Sequence record: NC_061444.1
Strand: one strand, 5' to 3'
Length of the DNA: 64,000 bases
A program made the translations under genes and the position numbers. The first letter of the stretch is position 1, and every line of letters begins with the position of its first letter. Positions 24,236 through 27,612 of this stretch are shown here, one piece after another. Below the pieces are notes generated by a model. That model was given only the letters and a program-made list of their open reading frames with translations, searched no databases and was not told the origin of the DNA.

Positions 24236-24525
24236 TAGCCAAATCTCACGTTAGAGCTGCCGTTAGAAGCAGTGTCACCACAACTGTTTGGGTCACCAGC
24301 TCGCTGGGCAGGCTTGCCATTGACACGCACACTGGAGCCTGAGATAGCTGTACCTGTATGAGGTGGCTTCTTCGGTTTCCAATGTGGCTTGTACTTATCG
24401 CCGTTACGAACACTGCCTTTGCCATTCACGAACACGTTAGACGATGCTTGTGCCGGAACAACAGGGAAGTAACCGTTATGTCCAGTAGAAAGGTCAGTGC
24501 CTAGACGAATAGCTTTCTGTCCCAT
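24235..24525 (-). CDS. PAAR spike-tip protein (T4 gp5.4-like)
   Basis: MGQKAIRLGTDLSTGH...VFVNGKGSVRNGD...VRVNGKPAQRAGD; ATG at 24525 with AGAGGAGA RBS. Confidence 0.9.
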   Translation of the reverse strand: MGQKAIRLGTDLSTGHNGYFPVVPAQASSNVFVNGKGSVRNGDKYKPHWKPKKPPHTGTAISGSSVRVNGKPAQRAGDPNSCGDTASNGSSNVRFG

Positions 24526-24575
24526 GATATTCTCCTCTGTTAGGCACAAATTAGCTTGTTATGCAGTAGAAACGA

Positions 24576-24604
24576 AAACGGGCGACCCGAAGGCCACCCG
24601 CTTT
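24576..24604 (-). terminator. Rho-independent terminator of the small structured RNA
   Basis: Minus strand GCGGGTGGCC-TTCG-GGTCGCCCGT-TTTCGTTTCT. Confidence 0.85.
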
Positions 24605-24804
24605 CTATGCTTGGATTTGTGTCGCTTACTCCCTCACACCCGAAGCGAGTGCCCGGTAGCCGAAGCTACTAAGCTGGAGTGACTGACCGAGAGTGAAGCC
24701 GCATCAAACGGCAACTGTAAGTGACTCTCGGAACATGATAGCAAACGACCAAGCATCGCAATTGCTATCAGCGACACGTAGAACAAAATCATGTTTGCTC
24801 CTTG
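24605..24804 (-). ncRNA. Putative compact multi-stem, pseudoknotted RNA of unknown class
   Basis: Three perfect 8-bp stems (GTGTCGCT/AGCGACAC, GATAGCAA/TTGCTATC, CCGAGAGT/ACTCTCGG), a cUUCGg hairpin, an 8-bp loop-to-tail pairing (ATGCTTGG/CCAAGCAT), own promoter and terminator; G.U pairs favour the minus strand. Confidence 0.7.
24634..24792 (-). CDS. Possible 52-aa hydrophobic peptide encoded inside the structured RNA
   Basis: AAGGAG RBS 5 nt before ATG; MILFYVSLIAIAMLGRLLSCSESHLQLPFDAASLSVSHSSLVASATGHSLRV; below the ORF-track length cut-off. Confidence 0.35.
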   Translation of the reverse strand: MILFYVSLIAIAMLGRLLSCSESHLQLPFDAASLSVSHSSLVASATGHSLRV

Positions 24805-24811
24805 TGTCTCT

Positions 24812-24840
24812 ACTGTAAGTAAAACATTTGCAAATGTCGA
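24812..24840 (-). promoter_or_regulatory. Sigma70-like promoter with a 14-bp palindrome across the spacer
   Basis: TCGACA-N17-TACAGT on the minus strand; perfect palindrome ACATTTGCAAATGT at 24824-24837. Confidence 0.55.
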
Positions 24841-24849
24841 TCAAGTTAC

Positions 24850-25810
24850 TTCGAGTTGCCCTTCGCCCAACATCACTAGGGTTTCAACTCTCTTTCTCTC
24901 TTTACCGCCTGGGCTGCGGAAACCGCACACAAGAACAACACATCAAGGACACACGGCGGAAAAGTGAAAAAGTTCCGTATGCCCTAACAGCATCGCTCAA
25001 GCGAAGGAGGTGACCCATCGGTGATCTGCGGTGGTTGATACACTCTTTAACAATCGCTCTTGTTGTGCATTAGATCGTGGTAGGAACGCGATTGACCGCT
25101 AACAAGTCCTATACGATATTTCACTACCCGGAAAAGTGGGCAAGCTATGGCAGCACGTCAACGGCAGCATGGCGCGGACACACTCCATTGAACATTGTTA
25201 AGGGCAATGCTCAACAGGCTGTGTACAGCTTTGACCAAACGCAGAGTCGCTCGTCGCCCAACATCACTTGAGTATCTCGTCTACGTTCTTTTACTCCCTA
25301 GATACCGTGAAAAGGCACGGCACCCATGAGGGTCGCGGATGTTTATCACATTAAGACTCTTACAGTTCAATCCTGTACGCAGTGTGTTGAGTCGTCCGCT
25401 GGATGACACACTACATACCCTCACCGTGTTGTACATCGGTAGGAAAGAGCTGGTGGAATTGTCATGGAGAGTAGATATCTCCCCAATGCACACTGTTATT
25501 GCCAGCCAGTGTGCATCAGGCAGCGTAACTGCGAACTGCTGTCCCTAAAAGAGTGGCCACAACGCTGAGAATACGTTCTACCAGTCTACGTGCCTAGAGG
25601 CTGCTGCCGTGCTATGTCGTAAAGATGAAAAGAACTGGGCCTTGTGGGCGTCAGCGGCAGAGCAACAGTCTATCACGTGGGTGCCGGGGTTGTCCTCACG
25701 ATTACAGAGCATAAGCTCAAACCGGCTGGAGGCTCACATGCCGCCAAGAAATACAGCGCGTGAGTTTATGGACCAGCAAGAGACTGCCCGCGAAGTAAGT
25801 CTCTTGCTAC
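24850..25810 (+). ncRNA. Putative large (~950 nt) structured RNA of unknown class
   Basis: No convincing CDS; more than a dozen hairpins and long-range helices, including 10- and 11-bp perfect stems; G.U pairs mostly favour the plus strand. Confidence 0.55.
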
Positions 25811-25848
25811 AACTTGATATTACTATCTGCAATTTTTATTTACAGATT

Positions 25849-27612
25849 TTAAAACGCTTTACGTTCGATATTCGAATATAAAGTTTCATACGGCTCAGAG
25901 TACAGTTCAGGACCGCGTTGAGCGCGTACAGTCACGTAACCAGTGTGACGGTTGAAGTCAGTGATTTCGACTGTAGGCTGTTTAGGCTTGAGAGTCGCAT
26001 AAATAGGAGCGTTCAGAGTTGGTTCGTCTGTCTGAATCTTATTTACAGATTGCAGAGCAGCGCCTGAAAGCGTAGGCAGCTTGAATCGCAGTTCAGCACG
26101 TTTCTGTCCGAACGCTGCGCGAATCATACCGTTTTCCAGCTTCACACCGTTCTGCTTGAGATATGCAGCGATGCGACGACCGATACCCGTAAGCTGATCG
26201 CGAGTGCGTGGGTCGAACGTACCTTCGAAGCTGATTGCTTCTTCCGGTTGACGTACAGACAGATGCAGACCTGTGTTGAAGTAACCTTCGGTCAGAAGAC
26301 GAAGCACTTCTTTGACAACCTCTTTCGTGTTCTGATTGATAGCAGCAACACGCAGCTCAGGCACGTCTACTTTGATCGGGTCACGCAGTTCGGTCTGGTT
26401 GTCCATGTAGCCGAGTGAAATGTGTTTCGCATTGGCATACGTATGCTGCAACACACCAGTAGCGCGAATCAACACAGAGCCGCCTTTAGCGAGGTCATAC
26501 AGTTCATCGCTGGTGGTTGTGCTGAACAGATAGTAGTCTGTAGGCACTGCCATGCGATTAACAGCTTCAACCGCTTTCGTCTGCGCTTCTTTCACAGTCT
26601 TACCGAAGACAACACGACTACGGTTAGGCTGAGAGGCAGACACAGGGAAGAACGCACCGTAAACAGCCTGCACGTTTTTCTTAATAGGCTGATCAGAAGC
26701 AATCTTCTTACCGCCAGCGAGCGGAGGCAGCTTAACGCCCACCAGCTTACCTTTGACGATATGCTTGTTTTCTTTAACAGGCTTGAGACTGTCGATCAGC
26801 TTAGACAGTGACGCACCATCGAGAATCTTCTCAAGCGGAACAACAAGGTTCTGCGGCAGATAGTGTTTCTTGCGATACGTGTAGATAACGGTGTCTTTCT
26901 TGACCTGCAAAGGCGTAGCCATATTGCGACCAACAACACCGACAGGCTGGAACGTGTTTGCTCTGTCGTTAGCGATTGAGCCAAACTGTTTAGTGAACTC
27001 AGTCTGACCGATGATGTTAGCGACACGCAGATGACCACGAACGATAAACACAATCTTCGGTTCATCTTTCAGGCGCAACTCGTAGCGGTCACGGTTCAGA
27101 TAAACCAGGCTGTACTTGTCGCCCTTCTCCAGCTCAAGGTCATACTCGTCGTTAGCGTCATCGACAACGACTTTCTTACCCTGATACGTAGCGTAAGTGC
27201 GAGCACCGGCAGACTCAGAAGCGATCTGCATTGCCTTACCGGTATTAGATAGCGATGCAGCGAAGTCACGCACGGCTGGCATCAGGTCGAATGAAGACGC
27301 TACAGAATACGGTTCGCGCTTATCGCCAAGATGCAGATGCACGGCGCTTGTGCTGGACATGAAGACTGTTGTACCTACATCTTCGTGCTTACCAGCAAAG
27401 TTCAGGCCGCTGATACGTTCGATGGTATTCGCATTCAGTGATTCGAAGCGTACATCGCTACCAGCAGCGAAGTCAAAGATTTCACCGTGACGCCAAGCAT
27501 AGGCAACGTTGCTGGAGCTAAGGCCAACAAACGCATCGCCAATTCGGCTGACGGTTAACGGCATGATACTCAGATCACGAATGATCGAGGACTGCTTTTT
27601 AATGAGGTTCAT
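25849..27612 (-). CDS. Hypothetical protein, candidate internal head protein (587 aa)
   Basis: Contains the ~65-aa domain shared with three other ORFs (TYATYQGKKV...KGDKYSL), preceded by SES-A. Confidence 0.7.
   Translation of the reverse strand: MNLIKKQSSIIRDLSIMPLTVSRIGDAFVGLSSSNVAYAWRHGEIFDFAAGSDVRFESLNANTIERISGLNFAGKHEDVGTTVFMSSTSAVHLHLGDKREPYSVASSFDLMPAVRDFAASLSNTGKAMQIASESAGARTYATYQGKKVVVDDANDEYDLELEKGDKYSLVYLNRDRYELRLKDEPKIVFIVRGHLRVANIIGQTEFTKQFGSIANDRANTFQPVGVVGRNMATPLQVKKDTVIYTYRKKHYLPQNLVVPLEKILDGASLSKLIDSLKPVKENKHIVKGKLVGVKLPPLAGGKKIASDQPIKKNVQAVYGAFFPVSASQPNRSRVVFGKTVKEAQTKAVEAVNRMAVPTDYYLFSTTTSDELYDLAKGGSVLIRATGVLQHTYANAKHISLGYMDNQTELRDPIKVDVPELRVAAINQNTKEVVKEVLRLLTEGYFNTGLHLSVRQPEEAISFEGTFDPRTRDQLTGIGRRIAAYLKQNGVKLENGMIRAAFGQKRAELRFKLPTLSGAALQSVNKIQTDEPTLNAPIYATLKPKQPTVEITDFNRHTGYVTVRAQRGPELYSEPYETLYSNIERKAF

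Follow-up and report, generated by a model that had tools for sequence, protein, structure and literature searches.

A conserved compact RNA with a short open reading frame in Alexandravirus-type jumbo phages: a candidate translationally gated mRNA for a small membrane-type peptide

The mRNAs of type I toxins are known for metastable 5′ hairpins, long-range closing pairings, structural switches and pseudoknots (PMC6733600, PMC11228461, PMC13000454, PMC7708055, PMC9841398). One of them, timP, initially entered the annotation as a non-coding RNA, RyfA (PMC11228461); its translation is controlled without processing by nucleases, through folds that exclude each other together with a pseudoknot and a long-range interaction (PMC11228461, PMC13000454). 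A comparable gating logic has been described for aapA1, hok and dinQ (PMC6733600, PMC9841398, PMC5066626). Here, we present a computational analysis of a conserved RNA element on the minus strand of a 64,000-nucleotide stretch of sequence record NC_061444.1 (the window), which shows 100% identity to the Erwinia jumbo phage pEa_SNUABM_32 (S32; Alexandravirus, 266 kb). With a probability of roughly 0.5, the element is the translationally gated mRNA of a peptide of 47-64 residues with one hydrophobic, membrane-type N-terminal helix, and in jumbo phages of the Alexandravirus type it probably makes up the 3′ domain of a transcription unit some 1.3 kb long. An earlier note, made from the sequence alone, had described it as a compact, doubly pseudoknotted RNA, possibly a ribozyme, a riboswitch-like or a protein-binding RNA. 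That interpretation appears partly right, in that the RNA is conserved and compact with one pseudoknot, but the kind of RNA was most probably misjudged.

The element comprises the following parts, named here by helix (P), pseudoknot pairing (PK), Shine-Dalgarno sequence (SD) and short open reading frame (sORF).

24568..24811, minus strand: whole sORF/RNA element, with 5′ decoy, SD hairpin, open reading frame (ORF) with P1 to P4, PK1 tail, and terminator with U tract
24804..24811, minus strand: 5′ decoy AGAGACAC, a near-copy of the P1 3′ strand AGCGACAC, just upstream of the SD
24780..24803, minus strand: SD hairpin GGAGCAAA/UUUGUUCU, with the SD AAGGAG (24803..24798) paired with codons 3-5 and the AUG (24792..24790) in the loop
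24634..24792, minus strand: sORF of 52 codons, beginning MILFYVSLIAIAMLGRLLSC, with the start arrangement AAGGAG-N6-AUG and the stop codon UGA at 24636..24634
24777..24770, minus strand: P1 5′ strand GTGTCGCT (RNA GUGUCGCU, codons 6-8), which pairs with AGCGACAC
24626..24619, minus strand: P1 3′ strand AGCGACAC, in S32 starting 7 nt beyond the stop codon UGA
24769..24762 and 24744..24737, minus strand: outer strands of P2, GATAGCAA and TTGCTATC
24737..24769, minus strand: P2 hairpin GAUAGCAA..UUGCUAUC, with inner GCGA/UCGU and apical loop UGCUUGG
24749..24755, minus strand: PK1 5′ strand UGCUUGG in the P2 apical loop, encoding Met-Leu-Gly
24732..24739, minus strand: PK2 3′ strand AUCAUGUU, judged a chance match in this genome
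24731..24724 and 24694..24687, minus strand: P3, CCGAGAGT/ACTCTCGG (RNA CCGAGAGU/ACUCUCGG), with inner GCCG/CGGC
24628..24680, minus strand: P4 domain, ACUCC/GGAGU around GCUU/GGGC, GUAGC-UUCG-GCUAC and CUCGC/GUGAG, with the stop codon in the last stem
24608..24614, minus strand: PK1 3′ strand CCAAGCA, 4 nt 3′ of P1, invariant though outside the ORF
24605..24574, minus strand: intrinsic terminator with a 14-bp stem, UUCG loop and U tract to 24568; covarying

The five perfect 8-bp complementarities on which the earlier note was built are all present in their place on the minus strand, and the P4 domain (ACTCC/GGAGT around GTAGC-TTCG-GCTAC, plus CTCGC/GTGAG) is present as well. Their number is far beyond chance: 5,000 dinucleotide shuffles of the 191 nt contained on average 0.167 helices of 8 bp and never more than three, none reaching five. 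The minus-strand RNA (24812..24570) has a minimum free energy (MFE) of -103 kcal/mol with z = -6.9, compared with z = -2.6 for the complementary strand, and the MFE fold recovers P1, P2, P3 and the P4 domain.

A covariance model (R1) was built from the nested helices, with an MAFFT alignment of 16 relatives at 70-90% identity for the nested fold. R1 matched 24568..24823 of S32 at 284.8 bits. Its full-length copies were confined to this phage group, including four uncultivated IMG/VR contigs, and diverged copies were found at the same locus in Y3 (165 bits), Rivsvirus pEa_SNUABM_5 (45 bits), Yoloswag (39 bits), the Yersinia phage fHe-Yen9-02 (Yen9; 29 bits) and Salmondvirus JA13 and JA29 (17 bits, confirmed by eye). 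Copies at this locus thereby span eight genera, and the clade carrying the fold consists of giant Erwinia, Dickeya and Yersinia phages.

P1, P2, P3 and the P4 domain are conserved in these homologues, and compensatory changes across the eight genera back every nested helix. In P1, all eight pairs are double-changed and 98.6% of cells are paired across the eight genera, Yoloswag for example having AUGCUCG/CGAGCAU for the GUGUCGC/GCGACAC of S32. Across the same genera 11 of the 12 pairs of P2 are double-changed, and its strands differ even within Salmondvirus (CUAAUCUU/AAGAUUAG in JA13, CUGAUCUU/AAGAUCAG in JA29). P3 occurs among relatives as CCGAGAG/CUCUCGG, CAAACAG/CUGUUUG or AGGAAGG/CCUUCCU and its inner part as GCCG/CGGC, GGCG/CGCC or CGAUAC/GUAUCG, with six of eight outer and three of four inner pairs double-changed in four genera. 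The variants of P4a are GUAGC/GCUAC, CAGC/GCUG and CCGGC/GCCG(G), those of P4b CUCGC/GUGAG and CUUGC/GUAAG. Over the whole fold, 94.8% of cells are paired and 26 of 65 pairs double-changed in four genera (slid controls 3-10), and 93.3% and 46 of 65 in eight genera (slid controls 11-22), with 0 of 500 shuffles reaching the observed value in either set; these counts rest on model-fitted alignments, which lean toward structure. An unfitted MAFFT alignment gave the same helices in RNAalifold, with 20 of 55 pairs compensated. Taken at the level of sequence comparison, a compact conserved minus-strand RNA structure is confirmed, in which P1 closes a junction of P2, P3 and the P4 domain and a terminator follows.

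The segment AACATGAT, formerly read as a mere 5′ leader, contains the start codon of a conserved ORF of 52 codons with AAGGAG ahead of it. The frame is open in 20 of 20 sequences, with a length of 47-53 codons and of 64 in Rivsvirus. The other five frames carry one to six stops in nearly every sequence, and both remaining sense frames are stopped in 17 of 17. In a column shuffle all 17 distinct sequences were open in 0.02% of trials (P = 0.0002; 15% for S32 alone). Five of the six indels within the ORF are multiples of three (-3, -15, +3 and N-terminal insertions), in contrast to the RNA upstream, where no more than 15 of 119 gap blocks have such a length; the remaining indel, found in Snuvirus, inserts 1 nt close to the 3′ end of the ORF and merely shifts the stop three codons on.

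A signal at the protein level is located at the beginning of the frame. Variable sites are distributed 13/5/11 over codon positions 1/2/3 in the first 22 codons and 27/27/26 in the remaining ones, and the conservation score per differing codon is +1.78 in frame 0 versus +0.55 and -0.38 in the other frames for the first 22 codons, and 0.27 versus -0.01 and 0.08 for the rest. The amino-acid changes at the N-terminus are far milder than the nucleotide changes predict. It forms a hydrophobic run which ends with LLG(R/K) in most genera, the more distant Rivsvirus and Yoloswag included, and with LLG in Yen9 (MILFYVSLIAIAMLGR in S32, MLVFFWMLVVVCLLGR in Yoloswag, MLAFILSLLAVCLLGK in Rivsvirus, MIQLLFLLLLLMCLLG in Yen9). 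In the tail, HSLRV before the stop is replaced by HLHRA, with three residues changed and CUCGC/GUGAG turned into the still paired CUUGC/GUAAG; a single G-to-A change in the P4b stem makes UAA of UGA, and so the stop is kept. Other tail residues likewise vary under kept pairing (SESH, SNRP or QEGP). These comparisons show selection as protein for the N-terminal third, while for the tail they reveal no constraint other than RNA pairing and an open frame. With 47-64 codons and an N-terminus conserved in eight genera, the frame has the format of type I toxins, that is, a hydrophobic single-helix ORF of less than about 60 codons. A protein search in 5.8 billion sequences returned eight peptide clusters, all from this phage clade, and most GenBank records carry no annotated coding sequence (CDS) for the sORF. 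In pEa_SNUABM_17 (S17; L002, 776-808) and AD1 (L006, 1466-1498) an in-frame upstream ATG adds 11 codons (MFYLQRDTGAN-); other phages have not kept this extension, and S17 is annotated with the shorter form in GenBank.

As in type I toxin mRNAs, the ribosome binding site (RBS) is sequestered within the transcript, here by prediction and comparison only. In predicted folds of 13 representatives from the eight genera the SD core is stem-bound in all 13, with the AUG inside or beside the loop, and this is achieved by differing sequences (AAGGA/UCCUU in JA13, AGGAGCA/UGUUCUU in Y3, ACAAGAGGAA/UUCUUCUUGU in Yen9). A further helix, P0, was detected by RNAalifold, in which GACAC of the decoy pairs with GUGUC at the start of the P1 5′ strand. 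Across 18 sequences the pairing of the outer P0 helix is complete (100%), and one of its positions varies among C-G, A-U and U-A; the helix occurs as GGCAU/AUGUC in Y3, GACGU/AUGUC in JA13 and GACGA/UUGUC in Snuvirus. The decoy resembles the P1 3′ strand in each of the following phages.

S32: decoy AGAGACAC, P1 3′ strand AGCGACAC
Snuvirus: decoy AACGACGA, P1 3′ strand AGCGACAA
Y3: decoy AACGGCAU, P1 3′ strand AACGACAA

P0 and P1 share 3-6 nt and are therefore mutually exclusive. When either helix is forced, the two folds are nearly isoenergetic, with ddG(P0-P1) between -1.9 and +5.7 kcal/mol; these values come from nearest-neighbour predictions in which neither PK1 nor the 1-kb RNA upstream is considered. 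The MFE fold of a transcript ending just ahead of the P1 3′ strand joins the P1 5′ strand to the decoy, and it does so in 10 of 10 lineages.

We propose the following course of events. During transcription the decoy would pair first with the P1 5′ strand to form the long 5′ hairpin P0, which buries the RBS, so that no ribosomes could load on the nascent RNA. Once finished, the P1 3′ strand and the PK1 tail would compete for the decoy-bound nucleotides between folds of nearly equal energy, and translation would need a further trigger, which may be a factor, RNA processing or the upstream RNA. An initiating ribosome would have to unwind the whole domain and in most genera would stop 2-7 nt ahead of the P1 3′ strand, which it would read through in Yoloswag and Rivsvirus. 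The unconserved tail of about 30 residues is perhaps no more than a spacer, by which the hydrophobic helix leaves the ribosome tunnel before termination. Candidate roles for the peptide are membrane depolarisation, lysis timing and exclusion.

Two crossing helices had been proposed in the earlier note, and only one of them survives comparison. The first, ATGCTTGG/CCAAGCAT, is a perfect 8-bp pairing on the minus strand and corresponds to PK1. The second, AACATGAT/ATCATGTT (PK2), is likewise a perfect 8-bp match in S32, but it is not conserved: 68% of cells are paired, many close relatives lack it (ATCTGGTT, ATCTAGGC), it overlaps P2, and we regard it as a coincidence. The first A of ATGCTTGG also takes part in inner P2 (GCGA/TCGT) and ATC of ATCATGTT is part of P2, and for this reason both proposed pseudoknots partly overlap nested helices. 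The 7 bp of PK1 can be formed in every Alexandra-, Snu- and Sasquatchvirus sequence and in Yen9, where its strands are invariant except for wobble-compatible single changes. PK1 is supported because Salmondvirus keeps the pairing with a different sequence at the same positions, that is, in the P2 apical region and 2-3 nt past P1. This whole-helix compensation reads UUUGGCAAGGAG/UUUCUUGCCGAA in JA13 (12 bp, shuffle P<0.0005), and the complement in JA29 has 9 bp (shuffle P = 0.008). The presence of PK1 is probable in six of the eight genera. In Yoloswag the loop complement overlaps the P1 3′ strand. The start region of this phage, CAUGCUCG, is complementary to UGAGCAUG, located 8 nt past P1 (L045, 1410-1420 and ~1585-1595); this second 5′-3′ pairing would bury the start codon and occupies the place of PK1 in other genera.

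Several points weigh against a gated toxin-like mRNA. The hydrophobic stretch ahead of the conserved Arg/Lys measures just about 15 residues, and S3 and Snuvirus lack a canonical SD. The peptide has no match in Pfam, PHROGs or NCBIfam and no homology to any toxin family or other protein family; its translation is predicted from sequence, and toxicity or membrane activity would be hypothetical. Toxin-antitoxin logic is of no obvious use to a lytic phage. A scan of the plus strand found neither an antisense or nearby antitoxin RNA nor any promoter-like or terminator-like site over or beside the element, a scan which is blind to phage-specific promoters; a phage-encoded sigma70-like factor has been reported in this phage group in the PaBG paper (PMC7412058). 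In Rivsvirus and Yoloswag, PK1 is missing at its usual position and so is an adjacent terminator. To these points are added the structural lean of the eight-genus pair counts and the simplified energies of P0 and P1.

The element had been taken for a stand-alone RNA of about 190 nt, but it is only the 3′ domain within about 1.3 kb of structured sequence, the remainder of which is a single large feature.

24812..25848, minus strand: large structured non-coding RNA of about 1,040 nt, filling the gap from a 587-aa gene to the sORF

This gap was aligned from the stop of the 587-aa gene to the start of the sORF in 12 phages of three genera. The gap varies little in length (1,019-1,141 nt) and consists of invariant blocks with compensated hairpins between them. 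RNAalifold gave these values for the gap and for controls.

Gap, sense strand: 273 consensus pairs (92.8% paired), 129 double-changed, E = -427
Gap, antisense strand: 257 pairs, 108 double-changed, E = -345
Control, partners slid by 1-3 columns: 273 pairs, 23-41 double-changed
Control, columns of the same alignment shuffled: about 207 pairs, 37-41 double-changed, E about -200
Control, neighbouring coding genes: 280 pairs, 19 double-changed, E = -309

No conserved ORF was found in the gap on either strand; stop-free stretches vary in frame and position, and 104 of the 119 gap blocks are not multiples of three. The RNA has no match in Rfam, which includes GOLLD, ROOL and OLE, and no mention of it was found in papers on these phages or in a jumbo phage review from 2026. 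Apart from a few uncultivated contigs of about 260 kb, it was found only in Alexandra-, Snu- and Sasquatchvirus. Yoloswag, Rivsvirus, Salmondvirus and Yen9 possess the sORF element without the large RNA, and because these four lineages keep it in this form, the sORF element works alone. An origin of the large RNA from degenerate copies of the sORF element, to which a resemblance of GAUGUUGGGCGACGAGCGAC to P4b-P1 had pointed, was rejected with a best model hit of 5 bits.

Within the large RNA, the 16-nt motif AAGUGAUGUUGGGCGA occurs twice on the minus strand (25269..25254 and 24878..24863), is invariant across genera and in each copy forms a loop closed by a covarying stem (ACUC...GAG / CCCU...AGGG). 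The motif may bind a protein or make a tertiary contact. A second invariant segment, GCAGAUCACCGAU...CACCUCCUUCGC (25029..25001, minus strand), is unpaired in the predicted consensus fold. CACCUCCUUCGC resembles the anti-SD 3′ end of 16S rRNA and could pair with SD sequences, including AAGGAG of the sORF. GenBank annotates several “hypothetical proteins” in the gap (L001, 2220-2363, corresponding to ~25881..25738 of the window; L010, 345-909; L013, 908-1069), whose strand and position differ between genomes and which overlap the structured RNA; these CDSs are probably spurious. The plus strand of 25848..24812 contains unusually few stops, and in S18 three overlapping frames are open over 75-135 codons. 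Neither frame nor position of such stretches is conserved, and the scarcity of stops is probably a compositional side effect.

Concerning the borders of the unit, the earlier note had placed the element between a sigma70-like promoter and a UUCG terminator. The terminator holds with its 14-bp stem and is the sole terminator-like site on the minus strand in 24300..26000. The promoter (24840..24812, TCGACA-17-TACAGT, 9/12) is a weak candidate: two such sites are found versus 1.9 expected in shuffles, and its -35 hexamer is not conserved. Between the -35-like and -10-like hexamers lies a perfect 14-nt palindrome of operator-like appearance, ACATTTGCAAATGT (24837..24824, minus strand), which is confined to the subgroup of S32, S17, S1, S30, phB78, AD1, 2910A and S33. 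Another candidate for a promoter or the start of the unit is an AT-rich motif which opens the gap.

25817..25848, minus strand: invariant AT-rich motif AATCTGTAAATAAAAATTGCAGATAGTAATAT, directly past the stop of the 587-aa gene

Two phages without the large RNA, Yoloswag and JA13, carry a related AT-rich motif 30-50 nt upstream of the sORF. The sequence CTGTAAATA occurs four times on the coding strand of the window (25848..25817, 26047, 35862 and 55928, minus strand) and nowhere on the other. A gene starts 24 nt past one copy, and a second copy, located within the 587-aa gene, is similar to the motif opening the gap (AATCTGTAAATAAGATT). CTGTAAATA is a candidate core of a phage-specific promoter. 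Large RNA and sORF element probably form one transcription unit, in which the sORF is preceded by a structured leader of about 1 kb in the three genera. More tentatively, and with some doubt on our side, the 1.3-kb unit (25848..24568, minus strand) may represent a new class of giant ornate phage RNA whose 3′ domain is a gated membrane-anchor mini-gene; ribosome entry would then tether the RNA to the membrane or switch its architecture, by which the timing of infection would be linked to the work of an RNA machine, and CACCUCCUUCGC and AAGUGAUGUUGGGCGA would be functional sites.

Other explanations of the element differ in how well they agree with these data. A possible, though rather doubtful, one centres on the RNA: the fold would primarily be a domain of the 1.3-kb RNA, such as a 3′ cap against exonucleases or a docking or multimerisation module, and the ORF would serve this RNA with a peptide that is itself inactive. 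Either the fold would be remodelled by a translating ribosome, or the hydrophobic peptide, still being made, would anchor the complex of ribosome and RNA in the membrane. The ribosome exit tunnel spans about 30 residues, and the ORF length, narrowly kept at 47-53 codons in most genera, suffices for a 19-residue helix plus the contents of the tunnel. Such a dual function also agrees with a tail that is constrained just to pair and stay open, with the contiguity of the element and the heavily covarying large RNA without a terminator between them, and with a conservation of PK1 and P1 which far exceeds what blocking of the RBS needs. It is at odds with the four lineages that have the element alone and with the conserved N-terminal sequence, where the LLG-R/K motif goes beyond hydrophobicity; tethering and remodelling would be hypothetical.

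That the element is purely non-coding, as the earlier note assumed in naming a ribozyme, a riboswitch-like or a protein-binding RNA, is unlikely. The open frame and the SD-like purines would then be structural by-products, which is in line with the strong covariation of every helix, the missing codon periodicity in two thirds of the “protein”, the scarce annotation of the sORF in GenBank and the poor SDs of S3 and Snuvirus. The frame that stays open in all 20 sequences of eight genera (P = 0.0002) with the other sense frames stopped in 17 of 17, the in-frame indels, unlike those of the upstream RNA, and an N-terminal protein-level signal limited to frame 0 argue against it. Nothing points to a ribozyme or riboswitch: in Rfam 15 no match was obtained for the whole window at gathering score or for 24400..26000 at E<=10, where only weak noise from miRNA models appeared, and this includes the cores of known self-cleaving ribozymes. 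A riboswitch would be expected to carry its aptamer in the 5′ leader of a downstream gene, and this fold lies within and 3′ of the ORF instead of ahead of a regulated gene.

Small single-helix membrane proteins are common in phages, and an ordinary gene of this type, whose mRNA structure protects the message without gating translation, would profit from a terminator hairpin and compact fold that lengthen the life of the mRNA. This explanation is nevertheless quite improbable, as pairing is selected at the cost of residues (HSLRV versus HLHRA; SESH versus SNRP versus QEGP), the SD is sequestered in all genera via different sequences, and the competition between decoy and P1 is conserved. Very improbable is a leader-peptide attenuator, in which translation of the sORF sets the terminator 24605..24574 for read-through into the baseplate operon: the terminator does lie within 30 nt of a short ORF with a same-strand operon directly downstream, but no conserved alternative partner was seen for either terminator strand, the PAAR gene is preceded by a separately conserved motif with its own SD, an extra small gene intervenes in AD1, 2910A, S33 and S3, and Rivsvirus and Yoloswag have the element without an adjacent terminator.

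The genomic setting of the gated sORF element is shared between phages. All long ORFs of the window are on the minus strand, and the element is located in a stretch of about 1.3 kb without solid annotation between these neighbours.

27612..25849, minus strand: upstream gene of 587 aa, a PHROG of unknown function with a KMPT-N domain
From 24525 (ATG), minus strand: downstream baseplate module, with the PAAR tip protein followed by gp25-like and gp6-like wedge proteins

The same arrangement was found in Alexandra-, Snu-, Sasquatch- and Salmondvirus. Between the terminator and the PAAR start, AACAAGCTAATTTGTGCCTAACAGAGGAG (24560..24532, minus strand) is near-invariant in Alexandra-, Snu- and Sasquatchvirus and is probably the promoter and SD of the baseplate operon. 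AD1, 2910A, S33 and S3 contain an extra ORF of 40-42 codons (MCRCTDWK...) between AACAAGCTAATTTGTGCCTAACAGAGGAG and the PAAR gene. In Yoloswag, Rivsvirus and JA13 the sequence ...AATGA(A/T)(C/T)GATTGGTTCT(T/A)TG... (MNDWFF/Y...) stands just ahead of the promoter-like motif (L045, ~1340-1365; L044, ~1400-1425; L042, ~1525-1550), as a short conserved coding end or mini-ORF.

Searches beyond this clade yielded no further copies. Pattern scans of IMG/VR returned the same jumbo phages and chance matches, and a metagenome scan with the P4b hairpin gave six chance matches, all in unrelated GC-rich genes. The more distant Salmonella phage Sen-NF has the PAAR gene without a preceding gap, and PaBG and Lu11 were not reached by tblastn. 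Further matches in some phage records, seen at E<=10 only and absent at 1e-5, were taken as short terminator-like sequences and rejected. A scan for tRNA and tmRNA was negative.

If the gated-mRNA reading is true, the architecture by which type I toxin mRNAs are gated, with its metastable 5′ hairpin, 5′-3′ closing stem and pseudoknot, would also exist in lytic jumbo phages, without a recognisable antitoxin, and the question arises what opens the gate during infection. The sORF is an unusually clean case of one sequence under two constraints, its first third being kept as protein and the other two thirds as stop-free helices, and should be useful as a benchmark for tools which separate coding from structural signals. 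Apart from this, a non-coding RNA of about 1 kb with more than 100 covarying pairs, absent from Rfam, is present in phages under development against fire blight. Large structured RNAs without a known function are seldom found, and so far new biology has come out of every new class. For genome annotation, several “hypothetical proteins” in these phages can be flagged as probably spurious.

Among described systems, the large RNA is best compared with GOLLD, ROOL and OLE, which are large ornate RNAs of bacteria or associated with phages (10.1101/2024.12.08.627333, PMC5737381). It differs from them in having no match to the Rfam models, in occurring in jumbo phages of enterobacterial hosts, in being joined to a gated sORF and in its very narrow distribution; it is like them in size, dense covariation, missing coding capacity, phage association and a function that is not known. 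For the sORF element, transcripts shared by a conserved RNA fold and the ORF of a small peptide are known from RNAIII of S. aureus (hld) and from SgrS (SgrT). In these, ORF and regulatory helices are mostly separate, whereas here the ORF spans nearly every helix, and no base-pairing target is known.

By analogy, the element would work like a type I toxin mRNA that lacks some marks of the family, as neither an antitoxin nor homology was found. Like it, the tisB +42 mRNA is highly structured, has a sequestered RBS and contains a pseudoknot, which is essential in tisB (PMC7708055). The pseudoknot of tisB is near the 5′ end and serves a standby site 100 nt upstream; here, an intragenic loop is joined to the 3′ untranslated region (UTR). 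The mRNAs of hok and aapA1 are activated by 3′ trimming and silenced by antisense RNA, neither of which is evident here, where a terminator hairpin lies directly 3′ of PK1, and there is no homology to them. They share with the element a hydrophobic peptide (about 30-50 residues), metastable 5′ hairpins sequestering the SD during transcription, and a long-distance pairing between 5′ and 3′ parts which closes the full-length mRNA in an inert form (PMC6733600, PMC5416894, PMC9841398). With regard to the enterobacterial timPR system, the scan of plus-strand sites revealed no antitoxin RNA similar to TimR, and sequence or Rfam similarity is missing. The helices of timP are in the 5′ UTR, those described here inside and 3′ of the ORF, and the element belongs to a lytic jumbo phage and has a structured leader of 1 kb in three genera. 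Common to both is the mRNA of a small inner-membrane peptide, here a predicted one, with the RBS held in a conserved stem-loop (PMC11228461, PMC13000454).

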